Source: Oikopleura dioica
Taxonomy: Eukaryota > Animalia > Chordata
Direction of reading: 5' to 3'
Length of the DNA: 64,000 nt
Assembly: GCA_907165135.1 (NCBI GenBank)
Contig: OU015569.1
Span: 1,178,001-1,242,000, forward strand
The notes below the pieces were generated by a model, which was given only the letters and a program-made list of their open reading frames with translations, was not told the origin of the DNA and made no database searches. The position numbers and the translations under genes were made by a program. This document shows, one piece after another, positions 5,063 to 56,957 of the stretch (positions are counted from its first letter, which is position 1; the number at the start of each line of letters is the position of its first letter).

Positions 5063-8000
5063 ATGAACCTAGACGATGTGGTCTGGGCGCCCTGCCCTAA
5101 AGATGGCTACAAAACCGCCAAAATCAAAGTAAGAGAGCGCCCTGTATTACTCCTTCGATCAATACAAACAATATGCAGGTGTATTTTTATTCCTCAAGTA
5201 GGAAAAAAATACTCCTATGAAATTCATTTCCGACTAATGCGGGATGTATTTTTGCTATTTTCTTGAACTGCGAAGTTGATCTAACTCGATCCGGGATATT
5301 CATAAAATTCACTAAATTCATTAAATTCGGCTCAAAATAGAAAGTTTGTATTTATTCGTAGGACATCGGAGCAACAGATATAACAGTGAAATTCTCCGAC
5401 GGCTCTCCTGGTGTCTTTGGCTATGACGACATCTATCCGACTGAGAAGGACTTGAAACGAACCGTGGATGACAACTGCGCGTTGATGTACTTGAACGTGG
5501 CCAACTTATTGAACAACTCGAAGGAGCGCTACATCAATGACAAATTTTACACCTACGTTGCCAACATTCTAGTCGCCATTAATCCCTACAAGAATATTAA
5601 AGGCATTTGCTCACAAAACTATCAAAAATGCACAAAAGCGCGGTTATTTAAACAGTATAAAAGTGAGTAGAATAGAATCTATCATAAAGATTCTGGAATC
5701 GCTAAGGAATTAAAAAAGATTGCTCAAATTTACACAATGACGGTTTATTGAAGAAAAATTTCAAAATCGTCAACTCGAGTCAAAGCAAATATGAAATAAG
5801 TTATTATGGAATTTTCAGTTCCGATTAATTTTTGAGCAGAAGGATAAGGTTTTTATGATGCTGCTACAATCAAAGCCTATAAAGGCAAGTCGCTTGGAAC
5901 TCTGCCCCCACATTGCTTTGCAATCGCTGACAAGTCGTATCGTGATATGAAGGTGTTCAATCAGTCGCAATCCGTGATTGTTTCCGGCGAATCCGGCGCC
6001 GGAAAAACAGAGAACACCAAGTTCATGATCAACTACCTCGTGCACAACTACGGCTCAGGACAAAGCTCGCTTGATGCGAAAATTATTGAAGCGAATCCGC
6101 TTCTTGAAGCCTTTGGAAATGCGAAAACCGTTCGAAACAACAACTCTTCCCGCTTTGGAAAGTTTATTGAAGTCCACTTTAACGAGAAGCACGCCGTCGA
6201 TGGCGCTCAGTTTTCACATTATCTTCTTGAGGTGCGCATTTCTCACGTCTTTTTATTGTAGTCGTGTTTGCCTTTTAGCGCTCAAGAATCGTCTCGCAGA
6301 ACAAGAACGAGCGCAACTACCATATCTTCTATCGACTATGCGCTGGAGCCCCTGCCGTAAGTGGAGCTCGACGTTTTCTTTCCTTTTTCTAACCTTTTCA
6401 AGGATGTCAAAGGCGCTTTGAAGCTACAAGCGCCCGAAGCATATCACTACCTAAATCAAGGCGACACGAGGCTCTTTGGATCACAGCTAAAAGATCCCAT
6501 GCTGAATGATAAGGTAAACATCGGAAATCTCTATAAGACTTTAGAAAACTATCGTTATCTAGAACTAAACCAATTTATGGAAGTGCATTCTTGAATTACC
6601 AATAAGATTGCTGTATTTGGCCCTTCGGCCAATCAAAACGCTGATCCATAAATTCACTTGCATAAATTGGTTTAACCCGTTTTCTAAGGGCGATTTTGTC
6701 CGGACCGAAAACGCGATGAAAAAGATCGGAATGGCAAAAGACAAAAGAATGGATGTTTTTAAAATTGTCGCCGCAGTTCTCCACCTCGGAAACGTAGAAA
6801 TCATTGATGGCTCGAATGGTGGAGCAGAAGTAACGCCAAAAGGTATTCCAGCGATTAATGCTGCTGCAGAGCTTCTTGGAATGGATGCAACGCAGCTGAT
6901 CGAATCGATAACAACGAGGGCGACGAAAATTCCCGGAGAAGCGACATTAGTCAAGGTACTCTTGACACTTTAGGAGCTTGAATTCCAGGGTTTTTTCTTT
7001 TAGAAAGCTTTGATTGCAAGAAATGCTATTCATGCCAGAGATGCTTTGGCAAAAGCTCTCTATGCGAAACTTTTCGACTACGTGTGTGAATTGATCAACA
7101 AATCCATCCCTGCTGGTGGCTCTAGCTTCATCGGCATTCTGGATATCGCAGGTTTCGAGTACTTCGAGAACAATTCCTTCGAGCAGTTTTGCATCAACTA
7201 CTGCAACGAGAAGCTCCAGCAGTTTTTCAACAAGCGAACTTTGAAAGATGAAATGGAACTTTACAAAACTGAAGGTCTCAAAACAAAAGGCGTTGAATAC
7301 ATCGATAACCAGGTATATGATGTTTGCAGACAGAAGCATATCCTTACTTGCCTTTCTCAGGATATGATCGAGCTGATCGAAAAACCCCGCGTAGGAATCA
7401 TTGACGTTTTGGATGAAGAGATGAAATTGCCTAAGCCGCTGGACTCTCACTTTGCGGAAACACTTTACAACAATCACAGGTATTAAAGCTCACCTCTTCT
7501 CATTCTGAGAGACAACTGGCGCGAAGTCTCACGCCCTAAATAAGGAAAAACGGGCGCTTCCTCTCGCCCCGAAAATCACCTGTGACAAAGTACAAAGCGC
7601 TGACTGACTCTGAGGCGTTCATTTTGCGACATTTCGCGGGAGCTGTTTGCTACAATGTCAACGGCTTCGTCGACAAGAATACGGACGGCCTTCATGATTC
7701 CCTCCTCCAACTTTGCGCCACTGCCAAACATTCCATTCTCGTCAAGGTAGCAAAATTAATTATATAAAATCACTTCATCATCTTTCTCAAAAAAAGATGT
7801 TCGCCGCTGATGCAAAGCGAAAAACCGGCCGCGGCAAACTTCAACTCAAATCAAATGGTTCCACCTTCCGGACGAATTTGAACATTCTGATGGAGAAGCT
7901 CAACTCAACTGGTTCTAGCTTCATCCGCTGCATCAAGCCCAACGAGAAAATGGCGCCACAAGAATTCAACGGCGCAAGTATCATGAGCCAATTGCATTCT

Positions 8001-10801
8001 GCTGGTATTCCCGCTGTTTTGGAGCTGATGCAAGCTGGCTATCCCTCCAGGACGCACTTCTCCGATCTTTACGGAATGTACAAAAAGCACATGCCGGCGA
8101 AACTGTCGAAGCTGGACCCGAAATTGTTCACTCGAGCTCTTTTCCAGGCGTTGGGACTCAACACCAACGATTTCACCTATGGCGTGTCCAAAGTTTTCTT
8201 CAAGCCCGGAAAATTCGCCGCCTTTGATCAGATGATGAACGGCGATCCAGAGCACCTGCGCGAGATGCTCAAAAAGTTGAGCAGTGGCTCATCAAAGCCA
8301 GATGGAGGTAAGACAGCGACATAATTATGTGGTTTTCTTTTGCGTGTTTTCGTGGACATTGCACTCGCTACTGATAATCGGACATAATACAGTATCTTTT
8401 CAGATACTACATTCACGGCGTATGGATGGCGATCAAACTCGAAAAGAAAATCGAGTATCGAAGAGCTGCAGCAACAACAGTTCAGGCCTACTGGCGAGGA
8501 TGGCTCGTCCGTCGTCGACAAAAGCTCGTTTTGGAGCTCTTCCGTCGATCCAAGAATCTCGTCGCTCGATCAGATGAGCTCATTCAAGCGGCGTCGAAGG
8601 TATCCTCTCCCACGGGCGCTTATTAATATTCTGATGACGTGAATAATGAATTAGGACCGACCTTTATCTCTAGGTTCCGAAAGGTAAAGCGCGTGACGAC
8701 ATGCTCAAGCAGGTCCAAAATTATCAATCGCAGCTGAGCGCGGCGCAATTAGCCACGAAGAAGTTGGCACTCGAAAAGAATCCCCAGACGAGTCCTCAAC
8801 TCAAAAAGATCGATCAGAATATTCAGGCGCTTCTAGCCCAGGAAGGCAAGCTCATGAAATCGATTGCCTCGCTTAGTAAAGCAGAGCAAGAACGGCTCAG
8901 AAAACTGGAAGAAGAACGCAGGCGGAAAGAAGAAGAAGAACGCCAGCGAAAATTGGTAAACGAAATATTCTCTTGAAATTTGCTAAAGTCAAGTTAAAAG
9001 GAAGAAGAAGAACGAAAAAGAAAGGAGGAAGAAGAGCGAAAAATGCGGGCAGAAATGGAAAAACAACGAAAAATTGAGGAAGCAAGGCAAAAGAAGAGGA
9101 ACAAAAATGCAAAAGATCCAGGCTCAAATGGTGTGTAACTCTATTATACGGTATTATTTTAATACCTCTATTATATCAAGTTAAATTTTCGAAAAGTCAA
9201 AACGGCAAAACTGGACCAGTAATTTTAGCGCTTATCTAAAAGAGCATGAAAAACTGGTCCAGAATAACATGACGTGAGTGAATTCTTATCACTCGATTGC
9301 AGGAAACTCTTCCTCTGAAAATACCCACATTTTCAGCAAGCAGAGAGCAAAAAGAGTGAATAAAAAGTGCCCTTTGAAAAATTTGAACATTATGAAACGA
9401 ATTTCAAAGAAATGAATGTTTAGGAAGCCGACATGGCAAGGACCGCTGCTGAGGAAACTGCGAAGCGACAACGGGAGGAACAAGAACGACGCGATAGGGA
9501 GCTTGCCTCGCGACTTCAAATGGAGCAAGATGAAGATGCTTCTCAAATTGGTCTATCCACAGCTCCAACGCGGCAAAAGAATATGTAGATTTTTGAGTTC
9601 CACGTTGAACCGATTGATAAAGTTCTTTTCTAGCGCCAAGAACGAAAAGGGACAGAGATATGACCTCACAAAGTGGAACTACGCTCAACTGAGAGATTTT
9701 ATCAACACAAGCAGCGACGTTGAAATGATAAAAAGTTGCAGGGAAGAGTTTGCGCGAAGACTGCAAGCTTATCACAAGTGGAAAGACCAGGTTATTCAGA
9801 AATTACGCGTTTGAAAGTAAATTTTCTTTCAATTAAGAACAAAGCATCTGGGCAGAGCACTGGAACACAGTCAGAAGCTAGAATGCCCGATAACGTTCGT
9901 GCGATGGCGGAACAAGCTGTCAGTCAAACGGGTTCATCAGCGCCGGTGACAGTAAATAAAAAACAGCGATACTTCAAAGTTCCTTTCAATCCTCGACAGG
10001 TAATGGAGATTTTAGATTAAGAAGGTAGATATCAAGAATCGCGATTTTCCGTCAGACTTTTCTCCCAAAGTTAAAATAGTGACACCCTTATTTTACTTTG
10101 GAAACAAAAACTTTAGACCTTTCTCTATTTCTTATGGAAGCTGAAATTTCAAATTTCAAAAACAATTTTGACAAAATTTTTCGTCAAAGATCGCTAATTT
10201 TCCTAAAATGGGCAGTTCGGCGACAATCGAAGGTGCCAGATTTGCATTGTAGCACCTCGAAAACTCAAGAAATCTGAATTTTTGGTTTCCATAGGAAAGA
10301 GATAATTGCCGGAAATAAATTTTGAGCAGAAAAAATAAGGGGGTCACTATGTTAAAAATATGAGAAAACCCTGACAGGAAATCTGATTCTTGATATCTAC
10401 CCCCTTAATAACTACCACTTGCTTAATCATTTCGAATAAAGATTTATGTTGGTACATGAGAGCGATGTTCTATTGACTTTTGAGTTTTAGGGAGGTGCGA
10501 AACTAGGTTGGTGGTATGCTCACTTCGATGGCAATTACGTGAAGCGGCAGATGGAGCTCCATCCGAACAAAGAGCCCATCCTGCTAATTCGTGGAAGACA
10601 TGACTTGGAGATGTGCGAGCTGAGTCTTGAGAAAACCGGACTTACAGGGTGAGTTACCGGCGGCGGTTAGTTGGTATTAGCATAAAATTCAGTCGCAAAG
10701 GCGCCGAGATCTTCCCACATATATTCGACGAGATGTGGGAGCGCTGTGGTGGGAAGCTCATTACCGATTGGAAGCCGCCACCACGTAGAAAGCAGAACTG
10801 A
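5063..10801 (+). CDS. MYO6: Unconventional myosin VI (about 17 exons); the sequence as given has homopolymer frameshifts near 8271 and 9089-9107
   Basis: N-terminus [11 protein letters not shown]-loop [56 protein letters not shown], charged SAH tail [10 protein letters not shown], and cargo domain [13 protein letters not shown] and GWWYAHFDG...[12 protein letters not shown]...EMWERCGG, all diagnostic of myosin VI. An alternative in-frame ATG lies at 4982. Confidence 0.96.
10017..10408. mobile_element. TTAA-flanked MITE with about 90-bp imperfect TIRs (Kolobok-like) in a MYO6 intron
   Basis: TTAA at 10017-10020 and 10405-10408. Left end GAAGGTAGATATCAAGAATC matches the reverse complement of the right end, GGGGGTAGATATCAAGAATC; pairing continues through ATAGTGACACCCTTATTTT. 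TTAA target plus purine-purine termini fits Kolobok rather than piggyBac (CCC termini). Confidence 0.8.
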
Positions 10802-12104: not shown

Positions 12105-15100
12105 ATGATGGTTAGCGAAGTTGACGTGAATGCGCGTGTAAATGAGACGGCGACGGCAAATAGCTGGCGGATGCATATACCAGACACGACGCCACCTGTT
12201 CAGACACTCCCTGTGCCTCAAGTCCCGACAGAACTGCCGCCAAGGGTTTGCCACTCCTGCAGAGGAAAAATCGACGACGCCTTCTCCTGGCAAGTTCATC
12301 CAGACTACTCTTTCCACCCTCACTGTCTCAAGTGCAGGTAACTGACCAGCTTATTTTTCAAATTTTATCGCAGCTAAATTTAAACTTCATCAAATAGGAA
12401 ATGGTAGAGCTACATCATAATGTTAGGGTTAGGGTTAGGGTTGGCTCGTTTTTGCATTTTTTCTTTGATAGGCATTGTTTCCGTCGAGAAATCTATCTAA
12501 TGAAAGATGTGAGCTGGAGTCTGATTAATAATTGATCATTGATACATATTTCTGCTTGCAAAAACGTCTAACAGTACTTCATTTTTGATGACAGGCGTAA
12601 AATTGATCAATGTGATCAGTGACGAGAACTTTTGATCTGTCGATAATTTGAAATCCCCCGAGAGCGCGGATTATACTTTATTATTATATCTTCTATGAAA
12701 AAATCCCCAGGGCGGTCATGTAGTTATCGTGGGAAGATGTTGTGACCCTTTTGGGTCCTTTTGGCTGCCTTAAAACGATGCAAGTTAATTTTCTTAAGTG
12801 AGTGTGGATGCTACTTCCAGGACGCGACGAGCTGTTTCATGAAAAACGAATTAGCCTACTGCAAGGATGATTATGAACGGTAATGAAATACTTGACATAC
12901 TGATAGTTTAATTCTTGATATTGATTGGTCAGTACCTGCGAAGTTTTCGATCTTAATTAGCAAAAATGAGGAGCGTGTTTTTCTGTGAATCGATGACCCA
13001 GGTCAGCATATGCAGCGACCTAGTAGAAGGACAGTCTCGTGACCTAGCTAGCCTAGCTCGGCAGGTCGAAGCGGCTGAGCCTGGATGGACGGGTTGAGCC
13101 GATCACTCAACGGCGGCTGTCCATGGCTGATCCAAATCCGCCCCGCGCGGATGAGATATCATCGACCCTCAGCGGTACCGCTCGATTCTGACAGTAACAT
13201 CGGCCAGTACACTTGCAGCCACTAAGTCAAGCTTATCCCCGCACTCAATGTCAACTTCGATTGTAAATCAGGCAATTGCGGATAGAGTGAGTTTTTTTAC
13301 TCAGCGGCGCCTTGCAGGCTCACCTCGACCAATCGCCACGGGCGAGTGTATTGGCTCGAGATCACTCAGATCATCCATCTGGCTCAACTTGAGCCTTGAA
13401 ATCAGCATGACGAAGGCGAGATCAAAGCCGCGCTCGCCACCGCTGAGTCTCAAGAAAAACAAAACACTTCTTCCGAAATTAACGCGCTCAAATCCCAGCG
13501 CAACAGCGTCGGAACAGCGATTTTTCCATGTCGATTTTGCATTGTCAAAAAAAAAAGGGATCAATCGTCATCCGCAACAGTGACCGCCGCTCAATGCGAC
13601 TCGCGGTTCGCGCTCCACACGCTTCAGTGATAACATAATCGTTAATCTTTTTTACTATCGATATCAAAATAAGCAGTTCTTTCTTTCAGACTCTACATGG
13701 AGCATTGTGCCAAGTGCGACCATGTGCTGCATCCGACCGATCTCGTTCACAAAGTCAAGAATTGCACCTTTCATGTGGACTGCTTCAGGAACGATTTAAA
13801 TTTTTTGACGAGCATATTTTATATAGAAGAAAATTGTTCCATGCCCTGTGAAAGATAAATAGAACAAAAGATAGTATAACGCGAGTTATCATATCGTAGT
13901 AAAGTTGTCTGAGGGTATGATTAATAATAAATCGAGTAAGTTGCTCGTCATGCGTTCGTGTTCTGGTCTCTGGTGATGAGTTCTTATTGATCGACACTCG
14001 TCTTTTCTGTCGACCTTGTCATGAACTGGAGTCGGAGCAATCTAGGCAGGGATCTAGAATAGTATCAAAATGAAAAATGACCGCAAATCGCCCACCGTAT
14101 CGGCTTCATGTCCAGCAGCTCGTTGCTTATTGCATTACGAATTAATGATAGCCTGAAAACAGACAACTGACATATGTCCAAGGCGACATCGATTTTTTAT
14201 TCTTATTTTACAGTGTAAAATTTAAGCACTCAGGTTGGAAATTTTCCCTTTATCCCTTCATCAGACAGAACCAATTCCGTTGCCGGGAGATGGAGCGACG
14301 AAATAAACCGAAAACAACGAGGTAAAATCTATTTTCCAAATCTCTTCTATGTCTTCATTGCCAGAGTTCGAACGGTGCTGAACGAAAAGCAGCTCCACAC
14401 TCTGCGAACGTGTTACCAAGCGAATCCACGACCAGATGCGTTGATGAAAGAACAACTGGTCGAAATGACGGGCTTATCCCCGCGAGTGATCCGCGTGTGG
14501 TTTCAGAATAAACGGTGAGAAGGGATCATCCGATCATTTTTGATAAAACCCCGAGTTCTTAACCTTTACTCATCCCTCACAATACTTCTTAGATGCAAGG
14601 ACAAGAAGAAACAGATTATGATTAAGCAGCTCGAAGATCAGAGAAATAATCAAGGTAAGTAAATAACGAAGAAAGAGTTAATTCCATCGCTATAATTTCC
14701 GAAATGATTTAACAAAAATGCTAGATTCGGGGACTGATGAAACGAAATCGATCGCGTCCTGCAAAGCGGTTTCGCTAGTCGCCACCGATCCCGTTCCGGA
14801 TAATCCTCAACAGAAGCTCGACACAGAGATCGAAATAAAAAGCTACCAGACACGGGCTCATTCATTTTCGTGACAGTATATATTCTCGCTAATTTCCAAC
14901 GCTAATTTCAAACTAATCAACCTACTGCAAGCTGAAAATATAGCCCCGAGAAGCAAAACGACTGGAAATCGCTCAACTCAATCTCGTACAGGGAAGACAA
15001 CTCGCTGCAGCAACTCGTAAGCAATTTTCTCGAGTTTCTGATTTTTATTTTTATCACAATAGGTCTCTTCGTTTTCGGATCCACTCTCTCATTCATCAGT

Positions 15101-19000: not shown

Positions 19001-22000
19001 GACGAAAAGTTTGGAATGATTCCACCCGTGCATTGGCAACAAGAACATCAACGCGTGGCGGAACTGCTCATAGAGTCCGAAAGTGACTGGGCCAATCCCG
19101 AGCACTTTGAAAACATTTGAAAATACATTACCCTGATCACACTTGTTCCCTTTCCAGCCTTCTGAGCACTTGCAAACGTCATCGATGCAGAGCCCGTTTT
19201 CGCACTCCACTTTGCAGCCGCTGTTCTTGTTCTTCCGTGATTTGCTGACACAAGTATGCATATCGCTGGATAGATCCTCTCCTTCTCCGCAAACACAACG
19301 ATAGCCACCTTTTCAAGAGATATTATAGACTACCGATGATAGCAGGCCTTTGCCCGGGATTTGAAGCTGTTCGCCACGGATGGCGAACAGGTTATCCGGT
19401 CAGCCAATCACAAGACAGGATTCTCTTAGTGGCGGCGTAACCCCGGATTTGAGTCTGCTATCGTCGTATCATGTGAAATTCTCTTCAAAAGCTCTGATAA
19501 TTATCAATTGAATCTCTGCCTTGAGTATTGAAGCAATAATCTGAGCATCCTCCTTTTCGAATTTGACATTCGTCAATGTCAAGACATGTGTGGCCATCCT
19601 GAGCAAGCTCGTATCCATTTGGGCAGTCGCATCGATAGTAAACATTTGGAGCAGCAATGTGGATTGGAGTAGATGGGGCGACGATTATCGTACTCGTAGA
19701 AAGAAGAATGCAAGTATGTGAGCATTTGTGGTTGGCTCCATCACATGTCGAGAGTGCTTCGCTTGTAGAATCGGCTTCTTCTTCGTCTTTTTCTTCCTCT
19801 TGAATTTCTTCACAGACAAAACTGCCCGGTGTATTCACGCAGTTTGAAAAATCGTCGCAAGGGGAACTAAGAGTGGCGCATTCATCAACGTCGAGGCAAG
19901 AAAAGGAGCCGAAACTGTTCGAGCAATAAAATCCTTCCTCGCAGGGTGAATTTTCACATTCGTCAATATCTTTGCATTCGTAGCTGCCTAGAGTATTCAC
20001 GCAGTTTGTGCCAGCCTGGCAACTCTCGGCCGTGCATTCGTTCACATCGACACATGTATACGAGCCTTCATTATTGAGACAAGCGTAGCCGTTGTCACAC
20101 GGCTCCTCAAAGCACTCGTTAATGTCAAGACAATCGTAACTGCCGTGTTTGTTGTAACATTCAAAGCCAACGGGACACGATCCAATTTCCAGACACTCGT
20201 CGACATCCACACATGAAAAGTTTCCAACGTTGTTGACACATTTGAAGCCGATTTCGCAGATGTTTGCTTCGCCGAAAACGGCGCACTCGTCGAAATCCTC
20301 ACATTGATAAGAACCTGGAGTATTTTTACACGTGAATCCCAAATCACACGGAGAATCGATCACGCATTCATTGATATCAAGACACTCAAAGCCATCAACG
20401 TAGTCGACACACTCGTAACCAGCTTCGCACTGCGCATTTTCGCAGAGATCGATTTCTATGCACTCAAACGAGCCCTCCGTATTCTGGCATGTTTGTCGCT
20501 TGCTGCAAGTGTTTATTTCTTCCGCGCACTCGTCAATGTCGATGCACTCTGAAAACAAAGTAGACTTCTTCTTCCGCCTCGTTAAAAGTCAACGGTTCCC
20601 GAGCAAGTTCAAAAAGTTTTGTATGCTTACCGTAAGCCCCTGGCAGATTAGCGCACTTGAAACCCGATTCGCATGGATGACTTTTTGGTGTTTACTAAAC
20701 CGATTGGTATCCAAACATAACCACAACACTCAAACTTAAACACTCCCTTTTGCATTCGTCGACGTCCTCGCATCTATATCCGCCGTGCAAATTAATACAT
20801 TCCTCGCCTTTGTCGCAAGGCTCATTAAGGCACTCATCTATGTCGCTGCACTTGAACGAGCCGTCGATCGTGTTACTGCATTCAAGTCCTGCAGCGCACG
20901 GATTTTCTTCGCAATGGTCAACAAAAGAGCACTTGAAATCACCATCGGAGTTTTCGCATTTGTATCCAACTGGACAGGCCATTATTTCGTGAGCGCATTC
21001 GTCGATATCGATACACTCATAATCGCCGTTAAAATTTTCGCATCTAAAAGAAGATATATCATATTCCTAAAAACAACATGTATATCATTAGACATCCCAC
21101 TTACCTGTAGCCTGAAGGGCAGATATTCTCCTTCTCACACTCGTTGATATCGACACATTCGAATCCAGCTTCATTAACTCTGCATTCAAAGCCAACTTCA
21201 CAGGGCTCCTTTGCGCAGGGATCGATGAAACTGCACAAGAACCCGCCAACCGTATTTTCACAACTTTCATTTTCGTCACAGGGGTTGTCATCGCATTCGT
21301 TTATATCGTAACATTTAAAGTCGCCTTTGAAATTTTTGCAGGTGAAACCATCGGGGCAGTGAGCTTGGGCACACTCGTCGATATCAACGCATTCGTAGCT
21401 GCCAGCCGTATTGATGCACTCGTAACCGTATTCGCACGGTTCCAAGGCGCACTCGTCTACGTCTACTTATCGGGTCACATTCGGATTTATAAAATAAACA
21501 GGTAATAAATGGTGACCTTAATCTATACAAGTGTGATCGTCGTTGTCCAAAATGAAGCCTGGTGAGCAAAGGCATCTGTAAGCCATGCCCGAAAGGTTGA
21601 CACACTTATCGCTGCAGTTTGCCAACTTGCAAGTATCAATTTCGCTGCAACTCTTGCCGTTGAAGTCAAGTGAGAAGCCGGGATAGCATTCGCACGTGTA
21701 CTCGCCCGGGAAATTGCGGCAGATTTGACCGCAACCGTGGCTAGAATCTGCACACTCGTCAACATCGTCGCATTGCCCGCCGATGGTCAGCTCGTATCCT
21801 TCGTTGCATTCGCAATTGTATCCTCCTCTAGTGTTAATGCACTTGTGCTGGCAATTGTGCGACGAGATGGTGCACTCGTCGACATCTTCGTCGCATTTTT
21901 CGCCGGTCCATCCTGCATGGCACTGGCAATGCGCCGTGTTTCCAAGCATCTTACAGACCCCGTTGCCACAGGACAAATCCTCACAAGTGAGTTGCGCTTC

Positions 22001-23424
22001 GAGCGATGAATTGCTGCATTCAAAGTCGTAGGAGCCCTTTTCCTTGCAGAATTGAGTGGGATGGCAGGGCTTGGTAAGGCATTTTCCATGTTCGCAATTT
22101 ACTCGATGGCATTTTGTTATGTAGCTGCTGGCATATCCACCGGTGTTGTACTTTTTCAGGCATTGAAATGATGAAGTATTGCAAGTTTCGAAGTCGCGGC
22201 AAATGAGCTGCTGCAACTGTGCGAGTTCATCAACCAGGCGGTTCTCTTTGATCACCCGAAGAATACGACTTGCGCTTCCGGTGAACTCATCGGTAATTCC
22301 GCTGTCCTCCTCGCCGACCACGACGGCAAAAATATTCACATCGTGGAAACTTCTAAGCTTGGTAGCCAGCGCATTTGACGAGTACGTCGGCGTTTCCCCT
22401 GACATGACGATTAATATTTTTACAGCCTTTCACAGAGGGGCGACAAAAATAAAACCCTTTTTATCGAAAACGAGAATGAAAGATCAAAAGAGGAGGTAAT
22501 AATAGTTTTGTTGGTGGCCCTCGTGCCTGAGCCCGTGCTCCGCGGGAGCGCGAAAATCCGTACTTTTGCACATTATCCAAAGCTCCTTCAAACGGATCTC
22601 CTTCCATTTTGGAGGAATTGCGTCCAAAGCGCCGCCGCAAGCTACGCAAATGACGTTGAGAGCGTCGGCTCGCGTGGCGACCTTTCCGACCAAGTGCCTT
22701 CCTTTTCATCTCCGACAAACTCGTTTTGAAGCCGGAAAACTCGTCGTAATCGTGGAAGGAAATGAATCGTTCGGTTTGCGTTTCATCAAACTGAAACACC
22801 GCCATTTTCACCATCGAGTCACTTTTTTATTGATGCAAATTTGGTCAATAAATAAAGCAAAAAAAAAACGATATGATATTTTTGCATACGAAATTTCCTA
22901 TACATCATCGTTGAAGCCATATAAGCCACAAGCCTCTTGAACTGAGAATATGCAGTACTCGTCGTCATATAACTTCATAATGGGTCATTTAACTTGGCAA
23001 GATGATACCCAGCTCACCTCGAATCCAAGAGAAAAAGAATGTCGATAGGAACATCCGAGGGACACGCATTTGTTCGAACAGCGGCGGAGATCTGCTCGGA
23101 GATGTCTTGTAAGTCCCTTGCTTCGACTTTGATAACATCAGGTTTTGGCACTTCTGCTTTGCGCGCATAAGAACTGTAGCTCAAATCTCTGGATCTATGC
23201 TGATGAGGGTAGTAGTTGGAGGGGTATCTGTACGTCGGTCGAATATTGCGCCTGTATATCGGTGATTTTTCTGTAGTCTGAGGCCTCTCTACCCAACTTT
23301 AAACTTTTCTTGAAAATCAAAAATAAAACCAACAACTTTACCGAATGTATCGATATCGGGGACTGGAATACGTCCGATAGCCGAAACTCAGCTGCAGCAG
23401 GAATATTAGCCGCTTCCAGATCAT
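16025..23424 (-). CDS. Secreted matrilin-like protein: signal peptide, vWA, about 30 EGF/cbEGF repeats, vWA
   Basis: Start MIWKRLIFLLQLSFG. vWA1 DILFLLDSS...VKMAVFQF...GFSRSRGARAQAVKILIVMSG. Serial D[IV][DN]EC cbEGF modules. vWA2 FDIVFLIDGS...RSRIGLVQFS...FLIMITAG. Exons join in frame across all introns, including the 1.35-kb intron 17783-19131. Confidence 0.85.
17909..19120 (+). CDS. Nested antisense gene, type II membrane protein of unknown function, 3 exons
   Basis: Exons 17909-18476, 18614-about 18677 and about 18718-19120 join in frame through GT-AG introns. N-terminal hydrophobic anchor SFVLAILAGPAILYVFRIIYFVGAG. The gene lies wholly inside host intron 17783-19131. Confidence 0.75.
18479..18609. 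repeat. (ATAAT)n microsatellite, about 26 units, filling an intron
   Basis: Perfect pentamer array directly after the GT donor at 18477 and ending just before the AG at 18612-18613. Confidence 0.95.
19331..19468. mobile_element. Small TA-flanked foldback/MITE in a matrilin-like intron
   Basis: CGATGATAGCAG (19334-19345) pairs with CTGCTATCGTCG (19455-19466). TA on both sides. Internal hairpin TGTTCGCCA-cgga-TGGCGAACA. Confidence 0.6.
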
Positions 23425-25334
23425 TTCTTTTTGTCTCTCTTGGTGTGTCTTTTTTATGGTTTTGAATGTGGAGCCTCGGTCATGTCGAAATCGCGGTCGG
23501 GGCCAAAGCCATTTACAGATGCACTTGGACAACGTCGCTGGCGCCAACTGGCGGAAAAGTTGCATAACGCGTTAAACACGCCGTGACGAGCACTTGAAAG
23601 CTTAATGACTACAAAATAAGGGATCAGCCACTGTGGATTAAACTGCTTAAACAGACAGGAGCAGAAGAGCACTTCCAGACGGTCTTTGATGAGAACTGAT
23701 CGGTATCAATTATACGCATCACCCACCGTGGCATTTTTTTTATATTAGAGGCAGTTACGAATTTATTGCTTCATGGGAATTATGATCTTGCTTTTTTTGA
23801 TCTTCAGTATGATTTAAGCATTTATGGTGTTGATTACGGCGAGTGATACAGTAATGAAAATAATAATTTTCAATTACTCAACGATCGAAAAGGTCATTCA
23901 AAAATTATAATCGTCGAAAGTACAAAAGTTCTTTATTAAAAAAACAGAGCTAAAGGTCAAAATAAACTGTGGAAAAGGCGGAAAAGGGTACAAGTTCGAG
24001 TGCATTCCAAAAATGCCACATTGGCCCGTTTAATAAATAGCAAGCTCACCAGCCGGTGCCGGTCGATAAAGTTAAGTGATCTTCGCCCTCTCGACAAGCT
24101 TTTGGTCCACCGTTTTAGCTACTTTATCTCACAACAGAGCTCGATCGGCACGCGGCTGAAGTAGCTAGTTTTTTAGCTTTTTTTAGTGTCCTGCGATGGA
24201 TTTATAAGTTTACTTTACGTGCTAAACGAGGACCGAAGGACAGAGCCGACGAAACTTTTTTTTTTGGAGAAGTTTCAAGATCAAAGGCGAAAGCACGAAA
24301 AAAGGTGAGAGGATATAAAATTTAAAGATGTGAGATGTTAACGAGAACGGGGAATTACTCCGCAGTCGGGAAATTTATTGCGATATTGGTGGGAAACCCT
24401 AAAGGCCTGAAATTTAGTTTTTCGTAAAAATGTCACAATTGAAAAATGATAATTTGAAAATATCAACGGCCAAAATTTGTGACGACCGAAAAACGTTTAT
24501 ACAAGTAAAACAAAAGATTACATCCGCCCGTCTCTATAAAACAAGGATTGAGTAAACACATCTTTCTTTTTTTTTAACAATTTCAATTGCTCATTTTCAA
24601 TGAGCGCCCTTATTTTTTTATTCCGCCGATATAGCGCTTTAAATTTATAGTAGCGATTCTTCGATTCCCGTGGCCTAAAAAAGTGCCTACGCTGAATTGC
24701 TCAGGTAAGACGCTCCTCTTTTATATTAATTGTTTTATACTATTTTTTGAATAAGTATCATTTTGAAAGCGCGCTGGTTTGAATCCAAAGGTGCTCGTTT
24801 GTTGAACCTTGAGAGCTTTATTTGAATCAAACGTTTAATCATTACTCCGCCGTTCTCAGAAACGTAGAAAGGCAGAAGAACGAGCTTGATTTGCTCTTCA
24901 ACAAGAGGGTATAATAGAGAAAGAGAAAAAGAGAGAGGGCGAGCAAGCTATTGTAATTTAAAGGGGAGTGTTTATCAATAGTACTAATCATTGCGATAAT
25001 AGGTGCCGCTATTCATAACGGAACTGTAAAGAGAGTCGAGTGGCGCCAAACTGTACGATAGTAGCGGTACTCCTCGTCTCGCTCGACCGGAGAGGCAGTA
25101 ATCTGTAACCGGAGCTTACTACCAAAACTACTGATTTGCCGAGAAGTCTTAAGAGCCGGAGCCTTATTCATGAATTGCGATTTTACGACGGCTCGTGGAT
25201 AGTTACTTGTTCACCCGCGCAGCGATTCATTCAAAGAAGAGAGAGAAAAGAGAAATAAAAACTACTCAAGAAGAAGAAGGAGCGAAATCAGAAAGTTCCA
25301 AAAGTTTCCCAGGCGGCGCAGAGTAAGAGAGAAG

Positions 25335-27176
25335 ATGCGAAACCTTTTCTTCTTCATTTCATTTCATGCGGCTCTTGGAGAGATTGAACTAATCCCAGTG
25401 AAAGAAGGTCGCGAGATAAACTTCCCGCTTCGGAATTTTAATTCAGCGGAGTTGAGCGATCTCTCCTACATCACCCTCAAAGACGACTCAGGAATGCGTT
25501 TTTGAGAGTCAAATTTAGTGAGTACTCGAGCTGGGAGCTCCTCTGAATGTATCCGGGCTGCTATTGAGAGCCATCCGGGCATGTTGTATTTGAAAAGGAT
25601 TCTTGAAAACGCTCTCCACAGGGAAATTCTATTTCAGAGGGAGTGTCTCAAATGGAAGGATCGACCAACATTCAAGCAGCGAGTTCATGCACTCTGGAAA
25701 CAAGCTCACGAGATCCAACGCACAATTGTCGGACGAAAAGAAATATGTGATCACCTACATGGCGACTCAAGAAGTTGAGGAAAGGGTTGTATCTGAATTT
25801 GCATCGTTTGAATCTTGATCGCTGAGCGCTATTTATTACTTAGCGGGGTCGAATTTTTATTAGGCCAAAACAAAGATTGATTGGAATGTTTCCAGCGTCC
25901 TAAATTGATGAATTGAGATGAGCAGATCCCAACCCCTGATAAGGATGAATTCGAAATCGTTATTTTGCAAGCACCGACCGTGCAAATAGATAAGAAGTTT
26001 ACGGGCGACTATGTGACACACAGCGCCGATCCCATTTTCTTGGCCACTTGTACAGGTGCATTTTCACGCGCATTTCTGTGAATCGAATTTTGTATTTTCT
26101 TAGCTGTCGGTGGGAAACCTGCTCAATCTACTGTGGAATGGTCTGTTCGGGGCAGAGATATGCAGCTGCGAAAGATTCCTGGAGCAGAAGGAAAGAATTC
26201 AGCAGACTTGAAATTGCCCGTGGAGAAGGAGTTTCTTGAAGACTTGTTTTTCGTTTGCCATGTGCAGCACGAAGCAGTAGACAATCCTATTAGCGAGGAT
26301 TTCGTTGTCCCACTCAAGTTCAAGCCGTTTACTCCCATTTTCGACATCCGATCGGTAGTGTGTTCCTCGGACGGATCAGCTATCGAGCAGATTTCTGTCG
26401 ATTGTTCTGATAATAGAGAATATCAAGCAAAACCAAGGTAATTTTCGACGAGTATTCACCTCACATCATCATTTTCAAGTGTCACTGGCTACGATATAAC
26501 GCTGCCAAATAATGTGATGAAAAGCCTAAAAGAACTGACGCTTACTCTGTACGAAATGGGCATCTACGAGACGCAAAGCTATTCAACTGCTGTTTTGCGG
26601 TGCACTACGAGCAATAGCATTGGCAAATCCACTTCCGCTAGTATCAACTTGGGCGACGCTTACGATGAGCATTGTCGCTCGATGGGCGGAGCTAGCTTCA
26701 ATGTCCTAATCGTCGTCATCGTTCTTATTCTCATGTAAGAGCTCTCACGACCCGTAAATCCGTAAATTGACGCCCCATTCAGAATTATTATTGTGGTCGG
26801 CACTCTGACCTGGGTCTTCCGGGAACAAATCAAGGCGAAATTCGCAAAGGAGCCAGTCGATTACGACCCAGCGGAAGAACGAAGTAGCATCACTCCGCCG
26901 CCAAACTATCCGGCGGCGCGTCTCAATTCAGGAGTGTCATTAGTTGGTGGAACCCTGAAACGAGATAATGGAGGGACACTGCGCTCCGATAGTGGCAACG
27001 CTCGACTAATTGTGCGTGATGAAAGTGACTACGTCGACACAGGTCAGTAAACTCCAAGGATATTCGCTTCCTCCAATTAGTATCCTGTTACAGTACCTAA
27101 CGAAGTATTTACAGTCGACGATCGCTACGCAGACGAAGAGATCCACTTCGACCCCAGGCGAACCATTCCTGTCTAA
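25335..27176 (+). CDS. Nectin/CADM-like Ig-superfamily adhesion protein (signal peptide, 3 Ig domains, TM, PDZ-type C-terminus)
   Basis: Signal MRNLFFFISFHAALG. V-type domain with L..SNAQLSDEKKY. C-type domain ATCTAVGGKP...VEWS...FVCHVQHEA. Third domain ending LRCTTSNSIG. TM VLIVVIVLILIIIIVVGTLTWVF. Ends RRTIPV*. Confidence 0.75.
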
Positions 27177-30320: not shown

Positions 30321-30359
30321 CAAGCTTGCTAAAAAGATCTTTGCAGATTCAGAAAATAG

Positions 30360-37562: not shown

Positions 37563-40500
37563 ATGATAAAAAATGCGCTTTTTACCTCACTTATAGGCAA
37601 GTATACTTCTTTCAGAGATCGGCGATTTATATTTTCATTTAGCTTCTACTAATGCCTTGTCACAAACAACACTAGACAAGTTAAAAGACCCGGCCGCTCC
37701 ACTCTCGAATGCGGAGCTCAGTTTCGTTGGATTGAATTTTGATGGCCCGTTTTGGACAAGCTGGTCGGATGACTATGGTTGCGAGAACTTGATTTCTAGG
37801 GCTGATCTTTGTGCATATCCTGGGAGATACAAGCTTCGTAAAACGCGCTACAAGTAAGGACTATTATTTCTTTGTCGTTCTTTTATGAGATATTCAGAGA
37901 ATGTATTCACCCGGACAATCGAAACTATCCAATGCGTATTCTGGATCCAAACTCGCCAAACTACTTTAAATACAGAACCATCCTCGGTGGTACAGACGAT
38001 CAGATTAGGAACGATTACGTCAACTTTATACAGTCAAAGCCACAGTTCAGCATTCAGTCACCCGCTGGAGACATGGATGACAGCATGGAAGTGAGATATG
38101 CGGCGACGAAATCTTTTTACAAAAATACCGGCATCAAGTAAGATCTAAGTATAACTATCGACTGTAGATTTTTGAAGATGCGGCACAGACGATTTCTCGA
38201 AGAACTGTCAGGCGCCTTCTGTGGCGACAGAGTGTGATCCAAGAATTGCGGAATATGCAAAGCAAAATGGAATTACAGTAGAAGACGCTGTTGCTCTTTG
38301 GGAGATTCAAGAAACTGATTCTCGCTGGGGAACCGGTAAAAGAAATAAAGTTGCTAGGATTGATGTACTCTTCTTTAAGAATGGGGTGCTTACCCGAGGA
38401 ATCCGATTCGACTAGCAATTCCTGAAATAAAAATCAACGAGCGAGCGGACACTATTTGTGACGATCGTTGCCCGATTCCATTGCCTTTTACCGCTTCCAA
38501 CTGCAAATGTGAGACCGGCTCGTCTTTCAGGGGATCCGAAAGTGAAGCAGTGGATCGATCATGCGACTGTGATGAATCTCCTGTCCGCGCTCAACTTTGC
38601 TTTGATCCCGATCTCAGTGATGACGTGGACTGCGAGTCTGTTGGAATTGTTTGCTCTTCTCAATTGCTGCTCTTGTACTAAATTCTTTTTTTAGGATATG
38701 CTTCGGAAGTTCCCCGATGAATGTATAGTCAATCTGAACCCTTTGATCAGCGAGTCTACTTCGAGCTACGTATCCTACACGACCACGAACAATCCATTTA
38801 CAGCACATTTGCTCGAGGATTGGTACAACAACATGCCGCGGTTCAGCAGGCAGCAGAATCTTTACAGCATGTCAGATTGGATCTCGACGGACGATATTGA
38901 TACACCTTGGAGAGGATTGAGAGTACGTGCAGATGCAGCGGAAAAACTCAAAGCCAACAATGGACTGAATTCAATTCGCAACGCCATCTCGAACTTGATT
39001 GAAGGAAGCAACTCGCAGATTCGCATCAATGTTCAGCGGCTGAAAACCCTTCTGATAACAGAGAACCTTGTCGATGTGCGGGAGGTAACAACTGATCCAT
39101 CGCCTGTCTCCAAGTTTATGACTAACTTTGCTGCTTCGACGAGAAAAGACAGCCGAGTTGACGGCAGCGCCAATCGCATGTATGACTTTTCCGATGATCT
39201 CAAGGTATCCTTTCTATACTTATCAAAACTAACTCAGACTAAGTTCAATTGGGGACAAGCTTGTGACAAAAACAATCCAGATGAAATCATAACAATAAGC
39301 AAGGCGACTCTCTATCTGACTGACACGAAGTACGCTGACAACCGCGAAACTATTCTAATTGATATCCCCTCGACTAATATCCAGGAAGAAAAAATTGAGG
39401 CTGTTGTCAGGATTGGTTTAACAGAACTGAACATTGCAAACACTGAAAACAGTCAGAAAACAATCACTTTAAACCCAATTAAGATTCATTAAACAGAACA
39501 TATCACCGATGCAAGTGGGGATTCAGCAGAATACCTGCAATTTTGTATCTGCGACTCTGGGAGAATGGACTGAATGGAGTTCTTGCTCGCAACAATGTGG
39601 TGGACGGTCCGATAGATTCCGAACTTGTACGACTAACACAGGCCAGATCTTTAGTAAGTACTCGTCGTATTTATTGACTTATTGGAATATTGCAGCTTGG
39701 AATGGAAACTGGGTAGACCAAGATGGCAACAGTCCAAGTAGCTGCTACTGCACGGAAACAGGTGGTGAGTCGAGAGCATGTGTAGAAAAATGCACGTACT
39801 CGGAATGGTCAGAATGGGGACTCTGTCTACTCAAAGGCGATGCTCGACCATGCAGGTAAGAAGAAATAAAAGCGACGCTAGCATTCCGTTTATTTTCTTT
39901 AGAAATCCTGACGATGATACTTTTGGGAAACAACGACGATCACGGACTCTTCTTTGTGGGGACGAGTCGAGATGCTGTGGAGATGACGATTTCAAGGACT
40001 GTTTTGTCCCTGAGTGCCGTAGGTCATCATGTATTTGAAACTTTCTAATTTCATTCAAGCTGGCTGGAATTCCTGGGGAGAATGGTCGTGTTGTTCTAAA
40101 TCATGCGGCGCAGCTGACGAAATTGGCACGCGTGTTCGCACACGGGGATGTAAAGGGGATGATATTGGAAGTGAAGCATGTCCGTGCGGCGTCTCTTTCG
40201 ATTCTCCTGATTCTATTTTCTCAAACACTTGCATCGACCGATCATCAAACTGCGAAAACGCACTGACGACATCAGACAACCTCGGATTTCTTCAAACAGC
40301 ACTCTGCAATCCTGAGAACGAGTGTCGTAAGTCTTCAGAAGATGTCATGAAAAATTCTATAAATAATTCAGCCAAGCTAAGCGAATGGTCAGACTGGAGC
40401 TCTTGTGATTGTGGAACTGAAACCGAGTTTAGAGAAAAGACTTGCATAAACGCTCTTTTCTCATTAGGCCGAATTCCAGAGTGCATGGGCGACGGAAATT

Positions 40501-44416: not shown

Positions 44417-45115
44417 TTATTTACTGGTCATCATCGCGACGAATTCCTCGTAATTGACTTGTCCGTCGCCGTCGATGTCTGCTTCTCTGATCATCTCGTC
44501 GACTTCCTCGTCCGTCAGCTTCTCGCCGAGGTTGGTCATCACGTGGCGCAGCTCGGCCGCGGAGATGTAGCCGTTTCCGTCCTTGTCAAATACTCTGCGA
44601 AAAACGTAAAGCCGGCTGTTGCGAGTAAATGCCACTAACCTAAATGCTTCCCGAATTTCCTCCTCTGAGTCTGTGTCTTTCATTTTTCGGGCCATCATAG
44701 TTAAAAATTCAGGAAAATCGATAGTCCCATTTCCATCAGCGTCGACTTCGTTGATCATATCCTAGCCAGGCCTACTCAAAATAAAAAGGTCTCAGAAAAA
44801 GACAATTTGACATCGAAAATTTCACCAAGCTTCTAAAATTAGGACTAGGTGCAATACAACGACTATTTTTACGAATCAAAAATGGTCTCTCGAGGCCTTT
44901 CCTGGAGTTCAGCTTCTGTTGGGTTCTGTCCAAGGGATCGCATGACTGTTCCCAATTCTTTGGTGGTGATGGTGCCATCGCCGTCCTTGTCGAAGAGGGA
45001 GAAGGCCTCTTTGAATTCTGCGATTTGTTCTTCCGTGAGCTACGAAAAGAAGAAAAGTTCGCGCAAGTTCCAGCTCGATTCATTTTAAGTTCTTTTGTTT
45101 TACCTGATCAGCCAT
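44417..45115 (-). CDS. CALM: Calmodulin, 4 exons
   Basis: [70 protein letters not shown]...[15 protein letters not shown]. Requires the GA-AG intron 44762-44901. Confidence 0.98.
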
Positions 45116-55168: not shown

Positions 55169-55322
55169 GAAGTGAATGAAAATGTGAAACGGTGAAATCA
55201 GAAAACGATACAAAATATTTTAGAAGAAATTCTGTCCTGCTGCAACATCTAGAATAATTTAATATCATTACAAGTTCAATGCTCTAAAAATGTTTATGAT
55301 GTTAACGTCGTTTTCGTTTAGT

Positions 55323-56377
55323 ATGTCTGGCGGTATGGGAATGAACGGAATGGGACATGGGATGGGGAACCCTCATAACCAGGGTAGAATGATGGGTAAT
55401 CAGATGATGGGAAGCATGGGACAGCAAATGGGCCATCCTGGCATGATGGGACCAATGGGCCAAATGGGACACCCACAGCATCAGGGGCATCCGCAGCAGG
55501 TACAATTCACTTTCTCGCTTGATACATGAGTCGCCTGTCAGATAGGAATGAACATAAATACTAGATGGGAGGAATGATGAATCAAATGGGAGCTCACGGT
55601 ATGGGAATGGGACAAATGATGAACCACAATCAAGGGCAGTCACATTTCAATCCGATGAACCAAGCGATGATGAACCAGCCACCGGTAATTCAAAATACCA
55701 AAACTATTTAGCCATCAAAGGTTTTAGGCACAAATGATGAATCCAATGAATCAAATGCAAAATCCATCTCAAATGGGTGGACCCCAACAAAATCCGCCTC
55801 ATTCGCAGATGGGTTCAACGCCTATGCCAGGGCAGCAGAATATGGTTCAACAGCAGCAAATGAATCATGCCCAGGACCAAGAGGTAACTTTACGTATTCT
55901 AAGCAGTGTCTAATAGTCATTCTAGCGAAATAGATTCATTGCTGAACTGGAGTTCGTCCAGTGCCTTGCAAACCCGAACTATATCAATTTCCTTGCACAA
56001 GAAGGATATCTAAAAAAGACAGAGTTTCTTAATTATCTGAGGTATTTGGAGGTACGTCAATCTATCGATGAATGTCAATGACTTGAAAATAATAGTATTG
56101 GAAAGATCCAAAATATGCAAAGCTGATAAGATACCCGACCTGCCTTCGTTTTCTCGAGCTTCTCTTGGACCCTCACTTCCGGGAAGCGATCGCGATGAAA
56201 AAGAACGCCAAAGAAATTGATGATCAGGTGATGCTCACTGGATTTCTCCATTTTTTTACCCTCGATAAGATTTTGCTGGCTTGGAACAGAAGGCATCGTA
56301 TTCGCAACGAAAGGATGCAAAAGGCGCACGCGAGACAAGAACAAAACCTCGCAAATCAAAACAGCAAATCCGCCTAA
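55323..56377 (+). CDS. MED31: Mediator subunit 31 (SOH1) with a long Met/Gly/Gln/Asn-rich N-terminal extension
   Basis: [26 protein letters not shown]...[31 protein letters not shown] is the SOH1 signature. Confidence 0.93.
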
Positions 56378-56509
56378 GTTCAATACGTCCAATTATCTAC
56401 ACGTTCTAGTTTCCCCAAATCAATCAAAAACTGCCCGTGTCGAAATATGTACATACATCAAAGTAAATCCGCGAGAGCCGCAACTGCGTCTAACGAAAGG
56501 GAGTTTAGA

Positions 56510-56957
56510 ATGCTTCGTCAGACTCGTCTTCTTCAAACTTGCATTCGTCTTTCTCAAAAACTCCATATCACGGAAGCTGCTTCGTCCCGCCTCGCCCAAG
56601 GAGGGATTTGAGAACGAGAAAGTGCCGTTTAGATGCAGTTTAGTTGCATTTGTGACAAACCCAGCAACAGTGTGTACGGAACCCGGTGAATATCTTCGCG
56701 TGTCCGTTGGTGGCGGCGGCTGCTCCGGTTACTCCTACGAATTCGAGCTGACTACCGAACCCATCGATCCAGAAAACGACCTTGTATTCACAAAGGACGA
56801 GCAGAAAGTAGTGACTGATGTGGACTCGATAGAATTCATGGATGGTGCGACGATCGACTACAAAATGGAGCTTATCAAAAAAGCGTTTGTTGTTGCGGAT
56901 AATCCCCTGGCCGATCAAAACTGTTCTTGCGGATCGTCGTTTTCAATTGACCTGTAA
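56510..56957 (+). CDS. ISCA2: Iron-sulfur cluster assembly protein A-type (ISCA2-like), mitochondrial
   Basis: Arg/Leu-rich presequence, LRVSVGGGGCSGYSYEF and C-terminal CSCGSSF. GA-AG intron 56601-56670. Confidence 0.88.

Follow-up and report, generated by a model that had tools for sequence, protein, structure and literature searches.

The window analyzed here comprises 64,000 nucleotides of the genome of the larvacean Oikopleura dioica (NCBI GenBank assembly GCA_907165135.1, contig OU015569.1, positions 1,178,001 to 1,242,000 of the forward strand; all coordinates below are positions within this window), a gene-dense sequence with a G+C content of 43%. It encompasses genes for MYO6, Islet (ISL), a matrilin-like protein, Prep/Pknox, a protein with TSP1 repeats, calmodulin (CaM), MED31, ISCA2 and PIGK, as well as an unnamed gene (25203-27200, +). 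Fourteen introns in the window were listed as having a donor other than GT, and 13 of these contain, close to both ends, inverted repeats that can pair into a terminal stem closing the intron, the remaining one (37597-37642) being a stemless exception. These stem introns, their junctions and the possible role of the stems are the subject of the present analysis. The first-pass annotation of this DNA had reported 13 inverted repeats in 14 non-GT introns; all 13 stems indeed lie where it placed them, and all 14 intervals, together with the quoted arms, were located in the window sequence as given.

In O. dioica, 11-12% of the introns are non-canonical (PMC8008620), and these have been characterized as ‘nearly canonical’ GV-AG introns (PMC8008620, PMC13326754). 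Larvaceans have lost the U12 spliceosome, and in Fritillaria, the U2-type spliceosome removes all intron classes (PMC13326754). Oikopleura has a conserved U1 and lacks a minor spliceosome, and yet it splices the approximately 11% of its introns that break the GT rule; N6-methyladenosine (m6A) at the 5' terminus of the U1 small nuclear RNA (snRNA) has been proposed as an aid for the splicing of GV-AG introns (PMC13326754).

Introns with non-GT donors and their junctions

The junctions were evaluated by comparison with reference proteins and with contigs of sister lineages that exon searches had retrieved from public metagenomes and metatranscriptomes. These contigs include a scaffold with the matrilin-like gene (L001), about 72% identical to the window; genomic sequences (L003-L006) and transcripts (L008-L011) of ISCA2/MED31; two contigs with the TSP1 gene (L096 and L098); and the single larvacean orthologue of Prep (P0030/L092), the exon search for this gene being otherwise dominated by other animals. 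Refinement of the boundaries by homology alone was too noisy, with references about 50% identical, and a rule of ‘same length, small shift’ performed better. The RNA runs that bear the same species label show fixed differences from the window (19651-25650) and almost no coverage; because they are mostly less than 90% identical to the window, they belong to a different cryptic lineage and contribute little to the placement of the junctions.

According to the first-pass annotation, all 14 introns need a non-GT donor for a conserved or continuous frame. For 10 of the 14 junctions, this claim has independent support, from protein conservation, sister transcripts, or absence or divergence of the intron in sister DNA. 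The intron 22822-22897 may use an upstream GT instead, and frame continuity is the sole basis for the junctions of the introns 14046-14264 and 25492-25621 and of the exception 37597-37642.

The GC-AG intron of MYO6 (5603-5848, +) carries the stem TGCTCAcAAAA/TTTTGAGCA, located 5 and 10 nt from the 5' and 3' ends of the intron, respectively (offsets 5/10 in the notation used below). With four myosin VI references, this intron is the sole solution, and the junction after NPYKNIK keeps the spacing of the motor domain; the stem closes both the minimum free energy (MFE) and the centroid folds of the intron (folding z-score -2.05). Two apparent extra non-GT introns of MYO6, near 8285-8417, were rejected, this region being accounted for by one GT-AG intron and a one-base frameshift in a run of A. 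The frame shifts in an A5 run (GCTCAAAAAGTTG) within 8263-8285 (+), where one more A restores a myosin VI-like reading. The probable cause of the shift is an assembly error in the homopolymer, and errors of this kind could mimic odd splice sites elsewhere.

The Islet gene contains two introns of this class. The GA-AG intron (13789-13940, +) has the stem CGATTTA/TAAATCG (offsets 3/6), which closes the MFE fold (z -2.89), and after its removal, the spliced LIM2 domain reads on from FHVDCFSC with conserved spacing. In the GC-AG intron (14046-14264, +), the stem AGGGAT/ATCCCT (offsets 2/7) closes both the MFE and the centroid folds, with a whole-intron z-score of +0.35.

Four stem introns reside in the matrilin-like gene, on the minus strand. 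The GC-AG intron 19309-19519 (-), with the stem AGAGAT/ATCTCT (offsets 2/7) and a long foldback in the interior, is exactly absent in L001, with the codon count unchanged. This intron of 211 nt folds at -67 kcal/mol (z -3.79), and in the MFE fold its 3' end pairs with the internal segment CUUUUGAAGAGA rather than with the terminal arm. Its 3' end, TCTCTTGAAAAG, acceptor included, matches CTTTTGAAGAGA, which occupies intron positions 29-40, as an inverted repeat (11/12), and the intron looks like a foldback of about 183 nt of the miniature inverted-repeat transposable element (MITE) type. The intron 21463-21522 (-) reads as AT-AG or, with a shift of 1 nt, as GA-TA; its stem, GGTCACcATT/AATGTGACC (offsets 5/10), closes the MFE fold. 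The exon end preceding it is TGT ATA G in the window and TGC ATT G in L001, synonymous changes that keep the sixth EGF cysteine, and therefore the GTATAG just upstream of the intron is coding. The third intron of this gene, the GC-AG intron 22427-22526 (-), has the stem CACGAGGG/CCCTCtGTG (offsets 1/4), which likewise closes the MFE fold.

The fourth, the GA-AG intron 22822-22897 (-), is ambiguous. Its stem, ATGCAAA/TTTGCAT (offsets 10/11), is not part of the MFE fold, and an in-frame GTATAG located 6 nt upstream, which is conserved in L001, may be the actual donor. The adjacent mini-exon 22898-22972 is conserved with respect to L001, with synonymous changes only, and is clearly coding. An RNA joint, 22823>23018, was considered as a refutation of this intron and rejected, given that a divergent mini-exon that the reads cannot be aligned to is the better explanation.

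The longest stem, of 15 bp with three G-U pairs (offsets 4/9), belongs to the GA-AG intron 25492-25621 (+) of the unnamed gene; the intron folds as a whole into one long hairpin (-42 kcal/mol, z -2.46). Five of the exon ORFs of this gene have no Pfam match, the sole signal being a faint, Ig-like one (E 0.1), and accordingly, the name ‘nectin-like’ that the gene had received is unsupported.

Both introns of this class in Prep/Pknox can be read in more than one way. The intron 30963-31055 (-), GG-AG or, with a shift of +1, GT-GC, has the stem GGTAGGaGCTA/TAGCCCCACC (offsets 0/4), which closes the MFE fold (z -2.00). It is exactly absent in the related larvacean represented by L092, where RRRILQPMMEN is unbroken and the codon count is kept. 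The intron 31173-31237 (-), TT-AG or alternatively GT-CA, AG-GC or CA-AG, has a perfect 10-bp stem, CGGTCTCCAG/CTGGAGACCG (offsets 3/8; z -3.49), and its removal yields the exact TALE homeodomain sequence, WLFQ|HLVHPYP. The related larvacean has, in addition, a GT-AG intron within the homeodomain (L092 2756-2806, LLQ|VNNWF) that is absent from the window. In many other animals, genomic ORFs of Prep begin right at HPYP, which suggests that the Prep intron of other animals (HLT|HPYP) lies three codons downstream of the larvacean WLFQ|HLVHPYP, as a near-intron pair or through intron sliding. Intron turnover between close lineages is rapid, the introns 21044-21104, 19309-19519 and 30963-31055 all being exactly absent in relatives.

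The GA-AG intron of the TSP1-repeat gene (39411-39483, +) has the stem ATTGGTTTAA/TTAAACcCAAT (offsets 1/4); in L096 and L098, the flanking exon blocks are conserved and the interior of the intron is unalignable. The GA-AG intron of calmodulin (44762-44901, -) is closed by AGGCCT/AGGCCT (offsets 3/6), a stem that is present in the MFE fold (z -1.27), and its spliced product (NPTEAELQ|...) is one that we take to match the calmodulin sequence. In ISCA2, the GA-AG intron 56601-56670 (+) has the stem GGGaTTTG/CAAACCC (offsets 2/8), and its junction, 56600|56671 (RLAQ|VCTEPGEY), is joined in the sister transcripts L008-L011 as well as in the proteins P0005, P0007 and P0008. Finally, the exception, the GC-AG intron 37597-37642 (+) with the donor GCAAGT, which was already described as stemless, proved to be so, with a helix score of 4 (see below) and a z-score of +0.52; its 3' end is T-rich.

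Repeats of 2-3 nt (NAG) at both borders make several of these introns readable in other splice registers, none of which yields GT-AG. In the genes that were checked against references (MYO6, MED31 and PIGK), no stemless non-GT intron had been overlooked: MYO6 has 11 verified GT-AG introns and the single GC intron, and all 5 introns of MED31 are GT-AG. An apparent GC-AG intron of PIGK was rejected, the actual intron being GT-AG (57539-57624).

Closing stems in the window and in related lineages

The helix score of an intron was taken from the best Watson-Crick helix, without gaps, that its first 22 bases can form with its last 27, and was computed blind to the stems identified earlier. The controls included 83 GT-AG introns predicted by a rough codon-usage gene finder, a loose set in which genes are fragmented or over-chained; a verified set of 19 GT-AG introns for the helix scoring, extended to 20 for the comparison of splice sites by adding the PIGK intron; random intervals of the same lengths; and shuffled intron ends. 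A helix score of at least 6 was obtained for 11 of the 14 listed introns, compared to 1 of the 19 verified GT-AG introns (p 2e-5), 10 of the 83 predicted ones (p 9e-7) and 9.6% of the random intervals. These results uphold, for the class as a whole, the association of non-GT donors with an intron-closing helix that was proposed in the first-pass annotation, as well as the lack of such stems in GT introns, which it had noted for strong GT introns checked by eye in MYO6 and MRLC. The individual stems of 6-7 bp are weak when compared to shuffled ends (p 0.02-0.17 each), and as a set, the listed stems are significant (Fisher-combined p 4e-5). The comparison of terminal helices with GT-AG introns and shuffled controls, which the first-pass annotation had recommended, demonstrates enrichment in the listed introns.

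Whole-intron folding gives a concordant picture. The terminal stem is part of the MFE fold in 12 of the 14 listed introns vs 6 of the 19 verified GT introns (p 0.004), and the folding z-scores average -1.72 in the 13 stem introns vs -0.21 in 8 GT introns (p 0.005). Duplex energy alone poorly separates the stems from random intervals, which exceed the introns in G+C content, and for this reason, runs of Watson-Crick pairs, the register and whole-intron folds were used instead. The stem observation is real and goes beyond chance.

The stems had been described as lying at fixed distances from the splice sites, with 1-9 nt on the 5' side and 4-11 nt on the 3' side. These ranges are close to those read by hand, 0-10 nt and 4-11 nt, respectively; the distances themselves, however, vary, and it is the register that is constant, the 3' offset exceeding the 5' offset by about 4-5 nt. 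The two offsets rise together (r 0.84, mean difference 4.1), and under the blind scoring, the difference falls between 3 and 6 in 12 of the 14 introns, compared to 15% of the decoys and 14% of the GT introns (p 9e-9). In other words, the base at position +k pairs with the base at about -(k+4 or 5), and the shorter stems are the same helix minus the outer pairs. Pairing in this register leaves a single-stranded 3' tail that ends in AG.

The sequence signals of the stem introns are depleted in a characteristic way. An AG at the exon end precedes the intron in 13 of the 13 cases, and G at +1 is kept in 11 of the 13, the two introns without it, in the register that keeps the AG, being 21463-21522 (AT) and 31173-31237 (TT). 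The match of the donor to U1 at positions +3 to +6 (1.85 matches, compared to 2.15 in GT donors) is not significantly different, that is, outside of position +2, the stem introns match U1 no worse than GT introns do. The proposition that the stem substitutes for U1 pairing is, as formulated, not supported, in view of this match and of the retention of the exon-end AG and, mostly, of G+1. The clearest second deficit is found at the 3' end, where the T-rich tract is absent: the T fraction in the last 12 nt before the acceptor AG is 0.20 in stem introns vs 0.44 in GT introns (p 4e-4). The stem introns are also longer, with a median of 96 nt vs 47 nt for GT introns. As noted originally, the stem sequences are unrelated to one another: the arms have no common sequence, no stem family is shared within the 64-kb window, and an Rfam search of the window produced no match.

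Orthologous introns from lineages with 70-87% nucleotide identity, in which the intron interiors are unalignable, keep their ends paired, and the donor letters drift while the stem stays, namely, GA/GA/GG in the TSP1 gene and GA/AA in ISCA2. The TSP1 intron is the most informative. In the window, it has a GA donor and the stem arm A-U-U-G-G(bulge)U-U-U-A-A; the orthologue in L096 (87% identical, GA donor) has a perfect 8-bp stem, ATCGGGTT/AACCCGAT, in which a U-A pair is replaced by C-G and the bulged C is now paired with an inserted G; and in L098 (70% identical, GG donor), the first pair is changed from A-U to G-C. The double change between the window and L096 was confirmed by a covariation count, for which only two rows were usable, so that significance is impossible to attain; the most distant orthologue was misaligned by MAFFT and RNAalifold, and its pairs were read by hand. 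The compensatory changes that were originally suggested as a test thus were detected in the form of two double changes in this intron, whereas elsewhere the changes are one-sided or the stem is conserved.

In the matrilin-like gene, both arms of the 22822-22897 stem are unchanged in L001, where the stem is extended to 9 bp and the loop is unalignable. The orthologue of the AT intron 21463-21522 in L001 has the stem GGGUCG/UGACCC, with one A-U pair changed to G-U, one pair lost and one gained at the outer end. The genomic orthologues of the ISCA2 intron (L003-L006) start with AA and have a weaker, interrupted stem. At one codon boundary in Prep, the window has the TT-AG intron 31173-31237 with its 10-bp stem and L092 has a GT-AG intron of 47 nt that is stemless (helix score 4, z -0.10). 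The retention of stems across such deep divergence speaks for present selection on them, irrespective of how they arose.

Possible function and origin of the stems

We lean, with reserve, toward the interpretation that the stem introns are spliceosomal introns with two weak ends that are clamped by a selected helix, which would act as an early RNA bridge. Both ends of these introns are poorly marked, the donor by the lack of U at +2, and twice also of G at +1, and the acceptor by the lack of a T-rich stretch before the AG, and a short, wholly intronic helix would tie the two ends together in a single register. The ordinary U2-type spliceosome most likely still removes the stem introns, which is favored because the exon-end AG and the acceptor AG are invariant, G+1 is usual, and the U2-type spliceosome is reported to handle every intron class in Fritillaria (PMC13326754). 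The helix would act early, bringing the donor and the acceptor together in place of the protein bridge that U1 and U2AF normally build on strong sites, and would need to open, or else to be accommodated, by the time of catalysis. Three elements of this interpretation are inferred: the formation of the helix in vivo, a promoting effect on splicing and the role of the spliceosome as the enzyme involved. The persistence of the stems in diverged lineages makes the juxtaposition of splice sites a reasonable function, and the stemless exception, with its consensus donor and T-rich 3' end, counts in favor of the same interpretation.

Several observations weigh against this interpretation. Stems of 6 bases around loops of approximately 200 nt are marginal, and in the introns 19309-19519 and 22822-22897, the arms pair with other partners in the MFE fold. 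G-U pairs are not favored over A-C mismatches (10 vs 13), a count that gives no reason to place the constraint at the level of RNA and not at that of DNA. The covariation is thin, consisting of two double changes in one intron that are not significant alone. The orthologue of the intron 22427-22526 in L001 has GT at the same junction, and its ends are still paired (-18.5 kcal/mol), which means that the stem and the donor type are not strictly coupled. Conservation of an intron end is by itself weak evidence, given that the 5' end of the GT-AG control intron 20549-20630 is well conserved too. The independent support for the junctions comes entirely from protein conservation and from the DNA and RNA of sister lineages. 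Furthermore, U6 pairing at +3 to +6 would be in conflict with a stem that begins 0-5 nt inside the intron, if this stem persisted into catalysis.

If, these points notwithstanding, the stems do clamp the splice sites, independently of sequence and in a fixed register, they would supply a second, directly testable answer, beside the modification of an snRNA base, to the question of how Oikopleura splices its GT-breaking introns. Such a clamp would also provide a rule for annotating stem introns, connect them with the introns that carry hairpins in Fritillaria, Euglena and Amoebophrya, and offer a simple animal system in which to find out to what extent RNA shape can stand in for the sequence of a splice site.

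With respect to what is already described, the introns with GA, GC or GG donors and AG acceptors are the same introns as the GV-AG introns of O. dioica, a definition (G at +1; A, C or G at +2; AG at the 3' end) that fits 11 of the 13 stem introns, whereas the AT-AG and TT-AG cases of the window and the AA-AG cases of the sister lineage fall outside it. The literature on the O. dioica GV-AG introns (PMC8008620, PMC13326754) makes no mention of a closing stem, a register or an absent T tract. Full-text literature searches, which did not extend to the contents of Denoeud 2010 and Henriet 2019, found no publication of closing stems in Oikopleura. The new elements are the register rule, the constant exon-end AG, the absent T tract, the unchanged U1 match, the contrast between the TT intron of Prep and its stemless GT-AG relative, and the compensatory changes in the TSP1 intron.

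Pairing within an intron is a familiar aid to splicing in yeast (e.g., RP51B), where an intron-internal helix shortens the distance between the donor and the branch point of a spliceosomal intron. That helix extends from after the canonical GUAUGU donor to before the branch point, in long introns; unlike the stems described here, it neither replaces sequence signals nor sits in a fixed register beside both splice sites. Mirtrons are short GT-AG introns that, as a whole, form a pre-miRNA hairpin with a stem of about 20 bp and a 2-nt 3' overhang. The window introns do not share these features, having stems of 6-11 bp (15 bp in one case), long loops, non-GT donors and 3' tails of 4-11 nt. In bulge-helix-bulge substrates of the tRNA or XBP1 type, the cuts are made in 3-nt bulges that flank a 4-bp helix between exon and intron. 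The window introns do not conform to this scheme either, the helices being wholly intronic with unequal single-stranded tails, and no exon-intron pairing was read in the introns inspected.

A different explanation is that the stems are leftover terminal inverted repeats (TIRs) of intron-creating DNA transposons (introners or MITEs) and have no role in splicing; we regard this as a possible but unlikely account. In Fritillaria, the non-canonical intron ends have been ascribed to transposon TIRs (bioRxiv 10.1101/2025.08.15.670264), and the MITE-derived introns of Fritillaria borealis (Henriet et al. 2019, as represented in the citing papers, bioRxiv 10.1101/2025.08.15.670264 and PMC13326754) resemble those of the window in that a larvacean without the U12 spliceosome has abundant non-canonical introns with TIRs and a short direct repeat upstream of the 5' site and at the intron end. 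Those introns differ in that their ends are mostly AG/AC or AG/AT with YAY repeats, the TIRs are those of repeated transposon families, and the unusual 3' ends are recognized by divergent paralogues of U2AF, whereas the window introns end in AG and have intron-specific stems, with no repeat family in 64 kb. A closely comparable case is that of the introners of the dinoflagellate Amoebophrya (PMC7789003), which are non-canonical, have inverted repeats of 8-20 nt linking their ends and direct repeats of 3-5 nt at the boundaries, and are predicted to form a hairpin; they belong, however, to repeated families, in an organism in which a U1 protein was not found, whereas the window introns are unique and occur in an animal with a conserved spliceosome.

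Within the window, the transposon explanation draws on the exact absence of 19309-19519 and 30963-31055 in relatives, which possibly reflects recent gain, on the MITE-like long foldbacks of 19309-19519 and 25492-25621, on the greater length of the stem introns, and on the sheer presence of inverted repeats near both ends in 13 of 14 introns, even though these lie 0-10 nt inside the intron and not at its very ends. Against it, the introns resemble neither each other nor any other sequence in the 64-kb window to which the search was limited, and their borders show no target-site duplication other than the AG usual at 5' exon ends. A duplication model predicts a constant sum of the two offsets, whereas the observed offsets rise together. 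The GT-AG intron 21044-21104 is absent in L001 as well, so that absence reflects general intron turnover; the stems persist, with compensation, where the intron interiors can no longer be aligned; and the TT intron of Prep occupies the site of an ordinary intron in a relative. A transposon origin and later selection for the stem are compatible, the rival being only the version without function, and for some stem introns, such an origin is plausible. Were the stems nothing more than scars of transposons, they could still serve to date and trace the gain of introns in the chordate genome that evolves fastest.

The helix could also be the primary signal rather than a clamp that assists weak sites. 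Under this more speculative reading, to which we assign rather little likelihood, a chordate would have evolved a shape-based intron code, independently of the euglenids, in which a hairpin in the appropriate register and the flanking AGs suffice to define the intron, with any first two letters and no pyrimidine tract; the reader of the code would be either a spliceosome operating without recognition by U1 and U2AF65 or a separate pathway.

Hairpin-closed introns are known not only in Amoebophrya (PMC7789003) but in Euglena as well (PMC12501133), and it is conceivable, if highly doubtful, that the stem introns, in the manner of nonconventional Euglena introns, are removed by a hairpin-reading pathway other than the spliceosome. 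Their geometry is reminiscent of the Euglena pattern 5'-N3-CDG ... CHG-N5-6|R, with a stem just inside both ends and a longer 3' spacer (PMC12501133). In euglenids (PMC12501133, PMC6221363, PMC3935182), as in the window, the borders deviate from GT-AG, a short helix inside both ends joins the junctions, and the borders carry short direct repeats that leave more than one register possible. Furthermore, GA, GG, GC, AA, AT and TT donors all occur among the introns described here and their orthologues, the T-rich tract is missing, and a stem so near the 5' end is awkward for U6 pairing. The Euglena introns, however, need a CAG/CTG-type motif in the arms, have spacers of 3 and 5-6 nt and do not require an AG acceptor, and the machinery involved is possibly not spliceosomal. 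In the window introns, the arms lack any such motif or other common sequence, the spacers vary (0-10 and 4-11 nt), and the offset difference is 4-5, compared to 2-3 in Euglena. The invariant acceptor AG and exon-end AG and the G+1 in 11 of the 13 introns are spliceosomal signatures, and in published experiments on Fritillaria, the removal of every intron class was attributed to the U2 spliceosome (PMC13326754).

The remaining explanation, chance combined with a selective choice of introns and boundaries, can point to the lack of significance of single 6-7 bp stems, to the failure of duplex energy alone to set many stems apart from random intervals, and to the three junctions without independent support and the ambiguous one, but is close to refuted because the scoring was blind and used fixed windows, 10 junctions were set by independent evidence, MYO6, MED31 and PIGK contain no further non-GT intron, the register statistic is independent of stem length and very unlikely to arise by chance, and orthologues in other lineages repeat the pattern.

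Neighboring genes

Upstream of ISCA2, on the same strand, lies MED31, and in the sister metatranscriptome contigs L008-L011, the two genes are spliced on one RNA (corresponding to window positions 55320-56957, +). A further contig, L007, contains three ORFs, with the start of PIGK following ISCA2. This arrangement fits a putative MED31-ISCA2(-PIGK) operon. The fifth intron of MED31 (56228-56269, +) is 42 nt long, in frame and stop-free, and its retention would add 14 residues to the protein.

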